Assembly: GCF_001194135.2 (NCBI RefSeq)
Contig: NC_068993.1
Location: 19,636,091 to 19,700,090, forward strand
Direction of reading: 5' to 3'
DNA: 64,000 bases
Source of the DNA: Octopus bimaculoides
Taxonomy: Eukaryota
Every line of letters starts with the position of its first letter. The first letter of the stretch is position 1. Below, piece after piece: positions 7,430 through 56,171 of this stretch. Under the pieces are notes generated by a model that did not search any database, was not told the DNA's origin, and saw only the letters and a list, made by a program, of their open reading frames with translations. A program made the position numbers and the translations under genes.

Positions 7430-7961
7430 TGGCTGGGACACCTCTTACCGGAGGTAAGAAGTTCCCAGCTTCATAAGATCTGAGTGGCTAAGCTGTAACA
7501 GGAACAACGGTACATATAAGTATATGTAACAGAACAACTACATATAAGTATATAGTTGGAATGATAGTGGGACGTACTCTCCATTCCCTCTGATTGTGCC
7601 GAAACCCGGGAATGGGAGGATTGGAATTGGAGATAAGGATAGACTAGCAAGGGCTGTCACTGGTGTTGGAAATAAATTTAGGGGTAGCCAAAGTAAATTA
7701 TGTAATTGTAGAGACCCTCTATTATGTCCTCTTGGCGGGCTCTGTCTATGTACAAACGTGGTATATAAATGCACTGTTAGGGACGAGAACAAACTAGATA
7801 AGTTTTATATAGGAAGCACGAAGAACTTTAAGGCTAGACATAGAGTGCATATGAGTTCGTTTTCAATGGAAAAATACAGTAACTCTACCACACTCACCTC
7901 TTATTTGCATGACCTCAAGAAGAAGAATATAAAGTACTCTCTTGAATGGTCTATTATACAT
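7430..7961 (+). mobile_element. Penelope-like element relic (linker plus GIY-YIG endonuclease), truncated by gap
   Basis: CNCRDPLLCPLGGLCLCTNVVYKCTV...FYIGSTKNFKARHRVHMSSF...STTLTSYLHDLKKKNIKYSLEWSII is the PLE CxC/CP..C-VVY/YIG endonuclease pattern. Upstream frameshifted KKFPAS and NRN-TVHIS resemble the PLE FP...FNRNTVKxSYS linker. Confidence 0.9.
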
Positions 7962-9733
7962 NNNNNNNNNNNNNNNNNNNNNNNNNNNNNNNNNNNNNNN
8001 NNNNNNNNNNNNNNNNNNNNNNNNNNNNNNNNNNNNNNNNNNNNNNNNNNNNNNNNNNNNNNNNNNNNNNNNNNNNNNNNNNNNNNNNNNNNNNNNNNNN
8101 NNNNNNNNNNNNNNNNNNNNNNNNNNNNNNNNNNNNNNNNNNNNNNNNNNNNNNNNNNNNNNNNNNNNNNNNNNNNNNNNNNNNNNNNNNNNNNNNNNNN
8201 NNNNNNNNNNNNNNNNNNNNNNNNNNNNNNNNNNNNNNNNNNNNNNNNNNNNNNNNNNNNNNNNNNNNNNNNNNNNNNNNNNNNNNNNNNNNNNNNNNNN
8301 NNNNNNNNNNNNNNNNNNNNNNNNNNNNNNNNNNNNNNNNNNNNNNNNNNNNNNNNNNNNNNNNNNNNNNNNNNNNNNNNNNNNNNNNNNNNNNNNNNNN
8401 NNNNNNNTGTGTGTGTGTGTCTGTGTGTGTGTGTGTGTGTGTGTGTGTGTGAGTGTGTGTGTTTTCGGAATTCAAGCATTGGTACGTTTACAATGCTTTG
8501 TGGATTAGAACCTGTACATTGCTTATGACAATGTGAGAAAGTCTAATGTATTTATGTGGTGACTTTTGAAAAGTTACACTGAGTTAATGTACAGTTAATA
8601 GTTGAGGATAAAAGAAATTGTTTTATTTTTATTTCTGTATAAAACCGGAGTTAAGTACCGACCATTAATATTGTTGCGCTTCCTGGAAGAAACGAAATGG
8701 TTGAATGAATAAAGTATTGAACTTCTAGATAAATCTGTAGCAGGCGTTTCATTACAGTCACAGATCGCTTATTTGTGGGAATAGACCCCAAATCTCTGGT
8801 TGTCAGATTCGTGATTAATTCTACAGAAACCAGAATTAAATAACACATCTAATATCCCTTGAGATTTGTGAAAGAAGAAACTATTTTGAGTTTGTATGTG
8901 AACCATAATAGATGCTTAATGGAAAGTTTAAAATCGAAATACAAGTTCTAAAGAATTCTTCACAATAATTCCATAGTTCATGAAATACAAAGATATCAGT
9001 CATTGAATATAAGACGACGTAAACCGAAGGGAAATATGCCAGAGAAGTGGAAAACGCATGGAGGCATTCCAAAGTATACTGGCTTGCAGACGAATGTGTG
9101 GTGCCAAATGGTATTGAAATCTATCAATAATTTGAAAGTTGTGTCTAGAAATACACTTGTACGTAAGGCCAACTAAGGAAATATTTCTCTCTATATACCA
9201 TTCCAATCAAGTAGATGCTTGTCAATATGAATAATTATTCTCTGCTCTTTTTGTCTTCAGTCTCAAAAGAAGAGACTTGGTTTATTTTCGTTGCCATTTC
9301 TATAATCTTATGTGTTGAAGTCACAAAAGAATTTTTTCTGTCAAGTTTTAAAATTAAAACCAATTGATTCTTTTCTTTGTCTGCAGTAATTTCTGTTTTC
9401 TTTTCCTCGACGTACGTAATGTCTACAAAGAGAATGGCTGCTGGATTGAGACAAGCAATCAAACAATCAAGTGCAAGATTAATGGCTTGCTGTTGATTGC
9501 GTTCATTTATTTTCTGAGTTCAAATGCGACTGGTACTTGATTTTCATTTCACGAAGTGTCACTAGCATACATCACCATCACCAAAATAAATATTCAGTCG
9601 ATCATGTCGACGCTACCTCTCCTTTAGATATTTATGGTTCATATTTAATAGAAGTTTCGACCTCTTACAAGTGAAATTTCATGGTATGCCAAATATTAAT
9701 GTCGTTCACGTTTGGATTCTGCTGCTATTAAAT

Positions 9734-9912
9734 TACGAGCTCGCAGGATAGCTAACACGCCGGGCATAGTGCTTAGAGGCTTTTCTTCCAGCTTTACATC
9801 CTGAGTTCAAATGCAACTGTGATCGATAAAATAAGTAGCAATCATGTATTGGGGTTGATGGAATCGACTTTCCCTCCTTCAAAATTTTTGGGTTTGTGCC
9901 TATATTAGAAAG
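9734..9912 (+). mobile_element. SINE family A copy, degenerate
   Basis: ctgagttcaaatg...gatcgataaaataagtagc...tggggttgatggaatcgact...tttgtgcctatattagaa. Confidence 0.65.
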
Positions 9913-10267
9913 GATTTTAAAGAGTATTACATGAAACAAGTTTTGTTATGAAGCATTATAATTTGTGTTATTTCTTCTTTAAGCTTTGTTCTACATTTGA
10001 TAAAATAGTAATGTATATGTGAAATAAGATGGCAAGACTGACCTACACACAGGGTTCCACTTAGGGGTTTCACTTTCTCTTTTGTAGAATTTCTCTTCGA
10101 CTGGAAATGACCAGAATAAAATCTCTGTTGGATTTAAAGAGTTCAACATGTAATAGAAGTTTCAGACAGTACTTCTGAGTAAAAATTATATATTTGACCA
10201 ATTATGATTCCAACACTGTTTCTGTATTTTGTGGAGACATATTTCGTGCTTTATATAACTATTGTTT

Positions 10268-53984: not shown

Positions 53985-54272
53985 TGGTTGAACAACGGCC
54001 GAGCACAAGTACTTGTACATTGTTGGGAGACCTTACTTGATCCTTCACAAAGCACCATCGATCGACACCTTCGTAAGTTCTGGGTCGTGAATAGACGTTG
54101 TCGAGAAGCTCCTCGTGGCTAGACCAATGACCAAGTGCAAACACGAGTGAACATATGCAAACCTAAATAGTGTCGGTGGACGTGTGGCTCGCGTTTGACT
54201 TCCCCTAGTAATTTGATACCGAAGCATCAACTGAAATTTTATTCCTCTCTGCCAGTACACACAGTGAGGATG
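53985..54272 (+). mobile_element. 288-bp mariner-relic fragment inserted in another repeat between 32-bp direct repeats
   Basis: Gap-free alignment to 55884-56171 with about 28 differences; flanks tgttttgttccaggttagtcctaaccaaacat (53953-53984) / tgttttgttccgggttagttctgaccaaacat (54271-54302). Confidence 0.9.
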
Positions 54273-55572
54273 TTTTGTTCCGGGTTAGTTCTGACCAAAC
54301 ATCTTATGATCAAAGGTATTCTAGATATAATCATCATTTTAGGTTTTTTTTTCAGGCACTAAATTCCATTACTCTACAAGCTGTTACCTTTTAAGAAATT
54401 TGAGAATTAATTTTTCTTTCAGTTCTACCTGAGTGTGAACCTGCACAGTTGCTCTCTAATTGGCTCCATCTAATATATATGATATTGATGATGCTGCAGA
54501 TAATGCTGGAGTTGTTGCTATGTGGTCAATATTTCGTGATAGATAAAATTAGTCGTATTTCTTTACCCATTCTCTGTAAGAGAAAGTTAGACGCCATTAC
54601 TAAAAGAAACATCTTCCATCGTCACCATTGTAGTCATGTAGAAATTAATTTCTGGTGTGAAAGCAGAAATAAATAAATAACAAACTTTCTTTATCCAAAT
54701 AGGAAAAGATATATCACAATTTAGCTGTCTTCCTCTACCTTCATAAACTAACTATAAAATATTCACAACAAATCGAAATTACGTTAAAAAAAAGTACTAT
54801 TATAGTAAGTCAAACATTCTACGGGAAGCTAACATCAACAGTAATAACCATAACCATAAGAAGAACAATAACAAGAAGTAAAGTAATGAATAATTAAAGT
54901 ACGAATAGTGAGTAAAATAGTATAAAAATAAATAAATATTTAGAAGGTAATAATGAGCAAGAAATACTCGAGTAAAAGACGGAGAAATAGAATGAAAAAT
55001 TAGCTACTGCACAGAAAATATATTTGGTGGAATGACAAAGGTGGCTTTGAAATGTTCTGCAACCATGTTGATTGGCCGGAAATTTAACACAGAATCGGGA
55101 AACTGACAGTAGTAACTCCGCATCAACAACTATAGACTGCATTGTAATGAAAAAAAAATTGATGAGTCAATGTGAGCGCCTTTATATGATCACTCGACTT
55201 GCTAAAAATAATTACTAAATCTACCTCAAATCAGGTGCTGCCATTTTAAAGAGAAAATAACAGTTGCTAATATATTTGTATGCATGCCCGCAAAAAGATA
55301 GGATAGTCATTGTTGGACTGTATCTGATGATAATTTTGCTTGATCACAATTGAATTGGAGCTAAAATATAATAAATGTAACACAAACAACCCTAGAAGGG
55401 AGGATGTAAATCATAGATGTTGAGTATATGTTGCATTTTATAAAAGAATTTCACACACACACACACACACACACACACACACACACACACTCACACACAC
55501 ACACAAGATTGAGTCAAATTCTTTTTCATAACTTGCATCTCTGTGTTATATAATTAGTTTGGTGCAGCTTGT

Positions 55573-56171
55573 TATCCAATCGTTGGTGATTTTTTTTTTT
55601 CATAGATAACAAATAAACAGTAATTGTTCATTTCTAAATTCATAGTTTTGATAATGAATATTGAAAAATGGCTATTAGAGCCATTTTGCGTTACCTGTGA
55701 AGAAAAAAAAAACTGAGAGTAAGGGCAGCAACAAAAGAAATCACTGATGTGAGGACCCGGAAACTGCCAACAAACGTGTGGCACAAAACGGGTTCAGACG
55801 TTTCAACGAAGGTAATGTCAGCCTCGAAGACAAATCAAGCAGAGGGAGACGGTTTGTTGTGGAAGATGAGGCCATGTACGAAATGGTTGAACAACAGCCA
55901 AGCACAAGTACTTGTACATTGTTGGGAGACCTTACTTGATCCTTCACAAAGCACCATCAATCGACACCTTCATGAGTTCTGCCTCGTGAATAGACATTGT
56001 CGAGAAGCTCCTCGTGGACAGACCAATGACCAGGCGCAAACATGTATGAACATTTTCAAATCTAAATTGTGTTGGTGGAAGTGCGGTTCGCTTTTGACTT
56101 CCCCTAGTAATTTGATACCGAAGCATCAACTGAAATGTTATTCCACTCCGCCAGTACACACGGTGAGGATG
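55573..56171 (+). mobile_element. Second mariner relic (N-terminal HTH region, frameshifted)
   Basis: MAIRAILRY...VAQNGFRRFNEGNVSLEDKSSRGR...EMVEQQPSTST...PSQSTINRHLH...CREAPRGQT, the mariner SLEDxPRSGRP and VPHEL regions; catalytic domain absent. Confidence 0.8.

Follow-up and report, generated by a model that had tools for sequence, protein, structure and literature searches.

Background

Transposable elements (TEs) interrupted by a segment of at least 50 bp that is found at one other locus have been surveyed across the genomes of humans and other vertebrates (Pace, Sen, Batzer and Feschotte 2009, PMC2671141). In human, 824 such cases have a donor less than 5 kb away and 66% of all candidates lie within less than 3 kb; the inserted segments average 162 bp and reach at most 619 bp. 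No poly-A was present in any proximal case that was inspected, the breakpoints show microhomology of 2–9 nt, filler of 1–68 nt and deletions, and target duplications of 4–21 nt accompany 6 of the 39 that were inspected. Across ten vertebrates their density is 0.08–0.65 per Mb of TE DNA, and the authors attributed the proximal duplications to synthesis-dependent strand annealing (SDSA) (PMC2671141). Here we describe two comparable structures and a shorter third patch in a stretch of 64,000 nucleotides of the Octopus bimaculoides genome (NCBI RefSeq assembly GCF_001194135.2, contig NC_068993.1, positions 19,636,091 to 19,700,090 of the forward strand), which as a whole is termed the window. In it, fragments of 185 and 288 bp (events 1 and 2) are copies of sequence a few kilobases away and stand between direct repeats of about 30 bp.

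Related products are known from experimental and natural systems. When paired nickases leave 3' overhangs of 43 nt, filling in and joining of these produces tandem duplications (Schimmel et al. 2021, PMC8355091), and templated insertions become more frequent at staggered breaks (PMC11081867). Inverted and direct repeat motifs at junctions are a signature of synthesis-dependent microhomology-mediated joining (PMC7407515). In rice, insertions of 10–1000 bp have been ascribed to end joining after the two strands were nicked at nearby sites (Vaughn and Bennetzen 2014, as summarized in PMC7407515). Our search of the literature indicated that repair-mediated duplication has hardly been followed up as a term, and it returned no survey of invertebrates. 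The window was picked because it shows the feature, and as a single window it gives no genome-wide rate; both events are known here from one assembly, and all copy counts given below refer to the window.

Results and discussion

Two local copies between long direct repeats

In a self-comparison of the window, the insert of event 1 is identical to its donor at 182 of 185 positions (98.4%) on the same strand, with the donor lying 3018 bp upstream from start to start (Table 1). The insert splits a short interspersed element (SINE), which on both sides of the insertion is 90–95% identical to copies at 27456-27843 and 34727-35106. These two intact copies align to both halves of the split element and, over 27474-27843 and 34745-35106, contain the segment GCCTTGTCACACTG(TG)TCACGCTGAATATC once only. 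As this segment is single in two intact paralogues, the repeats that flank insertion 1 represent a true target duplication, and the uninterrupted form of the host is thereby demonstrated for this event. A TG indel and a single C/T change separate the two target copies. A short, older SINE-related fragment at 58776-58832 also matches the core of the host SINE; in it the segment duplicated in event 1 is single and uninterrupted.

The junctions of event 1 show microhomology of 3 nt (ATC) on the left and 2 nt (GC) on the right. The right junction additionally holds an inverted filler of 11–12 nt: the opening 12 nt of the duplicated target recur in reverse complement at 10680-10691 (GTGTGACAAGGC). 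The end of the filler coincides exactly with target position 1, and the filler overlaps the right target copy by GC. Together with the left target copy it forms an 18-nt inverted repeat (89%), and this match between target copy and filler is the sole inverted repeat in event 1.

In event 2 the insert matches its donor at 260 of 288 positions (90.3%), again on the same strand, and the donor lies 1899 bp downstream from start to start. The junction microhomology amounts to 0–2 nt on the left and 2 nt (TG) on the right. The host of this insertion shows no more than a weak similarity to SINEs, located some 200 bp upstream of the insertion point. Neither terminal inverted repeats (TIRs) nor tails were found at the ends of either insert, and neither insert contains a poly-A, a (CAA)n tail or a retroelement 3' end. 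Instead, both end in unique sequence shared with the donor, which is followed directly by filler or by a target copy.

Table 1. Positions of the two events, the third patch and associated features; numbering is that of the window
Feature	Positions	Strand	Remarks
Donor 1	7478..7662	+	template of insertion 1; no other copy in the window besides the insert
Zn-finger (CxCx...C) and GIY-YIG nuclease remnant	7686..7961	+	5'-truncated; runs into gap at 7962
Acceptor 1	10268..10851	+	5'-truncated tRNA-like SINE with (CAA)n tail, split by insertion 1
Event 1, left target copy	10471..10498	+	28 nt; final 3 nt (ATC) overlap the donor start
Insertion 1	10496..10680	+	copy of donor 1
Palindrome at event 1 right junction	10680..10701		perfect, 22 nt; created by the inverted filler
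Event 1, right target copy	10690..10719	+	30 nt
Event 2, left direct repeat	53953..53984	+	32 nt; 29/32 identical to 54271-54302
Insertion 2	53985..54272	+	copy of donor 2; same stop codons as donor
Event 2, right direct repeat	54271..54302	+	first 2 nt (TG) overlap the insertion end
Mariner-like remnant	55554..56060	+	TIR-like 5' end and N-terminal helix-turn-helix (HTH) region
Donor 2	55884..56171	+	within a decayed mariner-like element; begins in the HTH-coding region
Third templated patch	61592..61617	+	26 bp, 100% identical to 62756-62781
Donor of third patch	62756..62781	+	inside SINE-like repeat copy 62682-62891

The observations in an earlier reading of this DNA (the original prediction) are thus confirmed in part. 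The sizes of the inserts, their orientation with respect to the donors, the distances of about 3.0 kb upstream and 1.9 kb downstream, the absence of tails or TIRs at their ends and the flanking repeats of about 27–32 bp (28 and 30 nt in event 1, 32 nt in event 2) are all reproduced, as is one SINE target duplication of 13 bp, at 27443/27843. The microhomology had been put at 2–5 bp; the exact overlaps are 3 and 2 nt in event 1 and 0–2 and 2 nt in event 2. That the fragments were pasted into repeats holds for event 1 with its SINE host; for event 2 the DNA at the insertion point cannot be shown to be a repeat. Likewise, the description of the inserts as internal fragments of a dead transposon applies to the left end of donor 2 only and is not borne out for donor 1, next to which the homology starts only at 7686. 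Two features, the inverted filler and the patch of 26 bp at 61592-61617, had escaped the earlier reader.

A third patch and the census of local duplications

We took exact repeats of at least 15 nt together with BLAST matches and excluded the dispersed repeat families, after which only three pairs of non-family duplications are left in the window, namely the two events and a patch of 26 bp. All three donors lie no more than 3.0 kb away and in direct orientation, and two of the three pairs are free of gaps. Under a uniform distribution of donor positions over the window, three donors at 3.0 kb or less would have a probability of about 8e-4. Within the window, a single further copy of each insert is present.

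The donor of the 26-bp patch lies 1.16 kb downstream of it, and the patch is set in otherwise unrelated sequence. It carries two variants that among six family copies are private to the SINE-like copy 62682-62891. It is flanked by a 3-nt repeat (ATG), with no long target duplication, and looks like a short locally templated repair patch. Next to it, on the minus strand, are two transposase-like open reading frames (ORFs) of 94 and 128 aa (61784-62601). These look hAT-like, and a putative hAT C-terminal motif would be interrupted by the patch; Pfam found no transposase domain in these ORFs and gives no support for the assignment.

A gapless scan for direct repeats at a spacing of 40–1500 bp and of a quality like that of the event 2 repeats returned only the event 2 pair, one minisatellite, two gap artefacts and the pair formed by the 26-bp patch. 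Twenty locally shuffled windows gave no such repeat, save one match that recurred in every shuffle and that we take to be a gap-flank duplicate in an unshuffled block containing N. Direct repeats of this quality and spacing are therefore not expected by chance, and the sequence features described here are real and non-random.

Origin of the donor sequences

Donor 1 contains an internal tandem duplication of 28 bp and is followed, 24 bp past its end, by the start of homology to a nuclease. An exhaustive protein search with the ORF downstream of donor 1 yielded 2262 relatives, in which the Zn-finger and GIY-YIG domain sits at the C-terminus of proteins of 350–800 aa. A profile of the longer relatives matches with E=1e-38 but covers 7686-7961 only, and a profile search recovered none of their upstream protein blocks in 6168-7686. 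As the homology is confined to 7686-7961 and the upstream blocks are missing, the nuclease remnant is 5'-truncated and donor 1 merely abuts it. The Pfam GIY-YIG model matches the remnant with E=8e-4. The relatives show a YRDDGL-type motif upstream of the nuclease domain, and Pfam detected no reverse transcriptase domain in them. The sequence suggests that the remnant derives from a Penelope-like retroelement. Word-indexed homologue searches with a junction ORF and with the GIY-YIG ORF gave no match.

The translation around donor 2 shows an N-terminal HTH region with a weak match to the Pfam family HTH_Tnp_Tc3_2 (E=0.046). Pfam found no transposase domain in the translations of this region. Donor 2 does lie in a decayed mariner-like element. 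The 5' TIR of this element is presumed from its resemblance to such repeats, and TIR searches found no 3' mariner TIR downstream of donor 2. The left boundary of the copy is internal to the mariner-like coding region, and about 100 bp at the end of the copied segment gave no assignment. An exact protein look-up of four ORFs covering the junctions and donors found no record, and a scan of metagenome contigs for exact conserved 26-28-mers of each donor found no match.

The insert and donor of event 2 have all stop codons of the former mariner frame in common. The Kimura two-parameter distance between the target copies of event 2 is 0.104, as against 0.105 between donor and insert, the former being a weak test as it counts only 3 differences in 32 positions. 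This parity suggests that copy and duplication are of the same age and that the nearby copy is plausibly the true template, since with another family member as the source the divergence between insert and donor should exceed the age of the insertion. The nearby copies are thus probably the real templates. As a separate observation, 13 of the 28 differences between donor 2 and its insert fall at CpG sites, with losses on both copies, which suggests decay driven by CpG methylation in this genome.

Placement in the assembly

The window has 35% G+C and 20 runs of N, leaving 57,390 read bases across 21 contigs. The two donors and two inserts lie wholly within contigs and none of them touches a gap. 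In event 2 the donor, the acceptor and the intervening sequence all fall in the gap-free contig 52436-59264. In event 1 the donor is in contig 6168-7961 and the acceptor in contig 8408-14217, with 446 N in between, so that the 3.0-kb spacing and the linkage of this pair depend on the scaffold. The remaining listed gaps fall between the two events and affect neither structure.

Elsewhere in the window, duplicates of 99.7% identity flank a gap of 11 N (28195-28509 and 28521-28835) and duplicates of 100% identity flank one of 10 N (33913-33951 and 33962-34000); most likely these are unmerged contig overlaps, i.e. assembly artefacts. Such artefactual duplicates at short gaps call for caution, yet neither event adjoins a gap.

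Proposed break repair with nearby copying

The best explanation of the structures is a pair of independent proximal repair-mediated duplications at staggered breaks, accompanied by a shorter third patch, and both are probably germline scars of imperfect double-strand-break repair. From the observed copies, target duplication, junction sequences, inverted filler and local donors we infer a staggered break, its polarity and the order of the steps. Two nicks about 30 nt apart on opposite strands would produce a break with complementary 3' tails that carry the 28–32 nt target. The tip of the left tail would prime at a site 2–3 kb away on the same chromosome by pairing of 0–3 nt, a polymerase would copy 185 or 288 nt, and the new strand would dissociate. 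In event 1 the left tail would end in ...AATATC, of which the last three bases (ATC) could pair with donor positions 7478-7480, and copying would continue up to 7662. The released end, ...GTCACTG, could then snap back on the GTCAC-containing stretch of its own tail, with five of seven positions paired including a terminal match. From there the tail would be copied backwards for 11 nt to target position 1, the boundary between single strand and duplex. The resulting end, ...AAGGC, would anneal by GC to the end of the opposite tail, at the point where the right target copy starts. Event 2 would follow a simpler course, in which 0–2 nt serve for priming, 288 nt are copied and TG anneals to the tip of the opposite tail. 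Finally, both tails would be filled in, and because both are retained the target would come to lie duplicated on either side of the copied piece.

These steps resemble SDSA and polymerase-theta-type end joining. That the filler stops precisely at the boundary of the duplication speaks for a break with 3' tails of about 30 nt. The original prediction had likewise named a staggered break with fill-in and copying of a nearby template; that part of its interpretation has the strongest support and gains further from the junction details found here. The interpretation as a whole is supported in part.

Several points weigh against this explanation. It is drawn from two events and one short patch, both events are seen in one assembly, and the uniqueness of the donors holds within the window. 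The linkage of donor and acceptor in event 1 hangs on a scaffold join over 446 N. For event 2 the window contains no paralogue of the host with an empty site, so that it is the 32-bp flanking repeat that points to an interruption. The copied tracts of 185–288 nt are far longer than typical polymerase-theta insertions, and complementary tails of 30 nt would normally just re-anneal. The target duplications of 28–32 bp also lie beyond the range of 4–21 nt reported for the class.

Alternative explanations

Serial template switching during replication, as in fork stalling and template switching or microhomology-mediated break-induced replication (FoSTeS/MMBIR), would account equally well for the serial switches in these structures. 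Here, a stalled nascent strand would re-prime a few kilobases away in the same replication zone, copy 185–288 nt and return about 30 nt behind its point of departure, so that the re-copied stretch would mimic a target duplication. Serial switches, microhomology of 1–3 nt, a local template and a short inverted segment are generally considered typical of this process. It gives, however, no reason for the filler to stop exactly at the target boundary, nor for both returns to occur at the first 2 nt of the segment of about 30 nt, and the near-equal back-steps of 28–30 and 32 nt in the two events fit a defined stagger better. None of these arguments is decisive, and on balance we regard replication template switching as rather unlikely.

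The flanking duplications also recall retroelement machinery, given that target duplications are a hallmark of its nicking and that Penelope-like endonucleases produce duplications of variable length (PMC8557442). The endonuclease of a long interspersed element (LINE) or of a Penelope-like element would nick in a target-primed geometry that gives 3' tails, after which either a reverse transcriptase would copy local nascent RNA with template switching or an aborted integration would be filled in by the host. A GIY-YIG remnant lies next to donor 1, and the 3' tails deduced for event 1 agree with such a geometry. Against it stand the lack of a poly-A, (CAA)n tail or retroelement 3' end in either insert, the derivation of the inserts from unrelated sequences and the length of the one verified SINE target duplication, which is 13 bp and not 30. 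Moreover, an RNA template offers no obvious reason for donors within 3 kb, and in human the proximal duplications never had a poly-A whereas distant ones did (PMC2671141). Reverse-transcriptase template switching, which the original prediction had listed as an option, is on these grounds the least supported route, and we consider an origin in retroelement machinery very improbable as a whole. Retroelement endonuclease nicking followed by host repair is nevertheless a possible source of the stagger.

An origin that is not local at all, from dispersed short families or pre-formed composites, or else an assembly artefact in the structures or in the linkage of the event 1 pair, likewise seems very unlikely to us. 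The assembly does contain the artefactual duplicates by short gaps noted above, donor 1 and acceptor 1 are on different contigs, and donor 2 is a member of a mariner-like family. Yet three of three unique duplications within 3 kb are improbable by chance, and the parity of divergence in event 2 and the private variants of the 26-bp patch point to nearby templates. Duplication by the assembler was ruled out, since the inserts and pairs of target copies have diverged (1.6% and 9.7%), the junctions share only 0–3 nt, which cannot produce graph mis-joins, and no key segment adjoins a gap.

Conventional transposition was likewise considered and rejected. Cut-and-paste insertion of a transposon or of a miniature inverted-repeat transposable element conflicts with the lack of TIRs and with duplications of 28–32 nt as opposed to 2 nt (TA for mariner). 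LINE or SINE retroposition would leave a 3' tail, which is absent although a flanking duplication (28/30 and 32 nt) is present. Insertion of a Penelope-like element is rejected because the copied segment 7478-7662 lies outside the nuclease homology and insert 2 is mariner-derived.

Comparison with described systems

On this reading the two events belong to the class surveyed by Pace et al., whose survey is in essence the search that the original prediction had proposed. In event 1 an insert of at least 50 bp interrupts a TE, and in both events the same chromosome holds the donor at a distance of less than 5 kb. Tails are absent, the microhomology is 0–3 nt, event 1 has filler and both events have a target duplication. 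Both thus show every feature of the class that could be tested, and only the length of the duplication, 28–32 nt in both as compared to 4–21 nt, is unusual. The original prediction had suggested a recurring local repair route, with many cases genome-wide, a number that one window picked for the feature cannot gauge. The route is not new, as the class is already on record from genome-wide work on humans and other vertebrates (PMC2671141). That survey was of vertebrates, whereas the repeat landscape of the window looks like one of an invertebrate type.

As in the products of staggered breaks that are filled in by CST/Pol alpha-primase, complementary overhangs of tens of nucleotides would here have been duplicated (PMC8355091, PMC11081867). 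In those experiments, however, the breaks are induced and the copies usually abut, while in the window the events are natural and 185–288 nt from kilobases away lie between the copies. With polymerase-theta or synthesis-dependent microhomology-mediated end joining the events share priming by 1–3 nt, serial switches and snap-back inverted repeats (PMC7407515). Polymerase-theta insertions are typically of a few to tens of nucleotides and templated within tens to hundreds of base pairs, so that tracts of 185–288 nt from 2–3 kb away are atypical, whereas the 26-bp patch would by its sequence fit such insertions well. The patch-mediated duplications of rice, as far as they are summarized in PMC7407515, are similarly natural and include short duplications from ectopic donors; they differ in that they occur in plants and have donors mostly within 200 bp.

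Wider meaning

For now, what the window shows is an ordinary repair scar of a known class in two instances. These add two examples from beyond the surveyed vertebrates, with event 1 offering a rather clean junction. Exons, regulatory sites and repeat fragments gain new copies through proximal repair duplications, which also preserve a record of the mending of breaks in the germline. A more far-reaching proposal is that this lineage experiences unusually frequent breaks with 3' staggers of about 30 nt, habitually repaired from within a few kilobases. This we think improbable, but if true the density of proximal duplications should be orders of magnitude above the vertebrate values of 0.08–0.65 per Mb of TE DNA, and the duplications should share a typical length of about 30 bp. 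A tight genome-wide peak of duplications at about 30 bp together with a high density would indicate a specific source of nicks in the lineage. The stagger could stem from a retroelement endonuclease that nicks abortively or from paired patches of excision repair.

Other features of the window

Scans of the window with Rfam and for tRNAs gave no match. A minisatellite at 24307-24412 consists of about six copies of an 18-bp unit (GTGGGCATTCTAGCCATG/A). A palindrome of 116 bp (88%) at 44953-45066 begins directly after a gap of 526 N (44427-44952); it may be a true inverted repeat or else an artefact of the assembly at the end of a contig. An ORF of the mariner type at 28543-28914 matches the Pfam family HTH_48 (the HTH of the Mos1 transposase) with E=1.5e-6 and lies partly inside the artefactually duplicated stretch.

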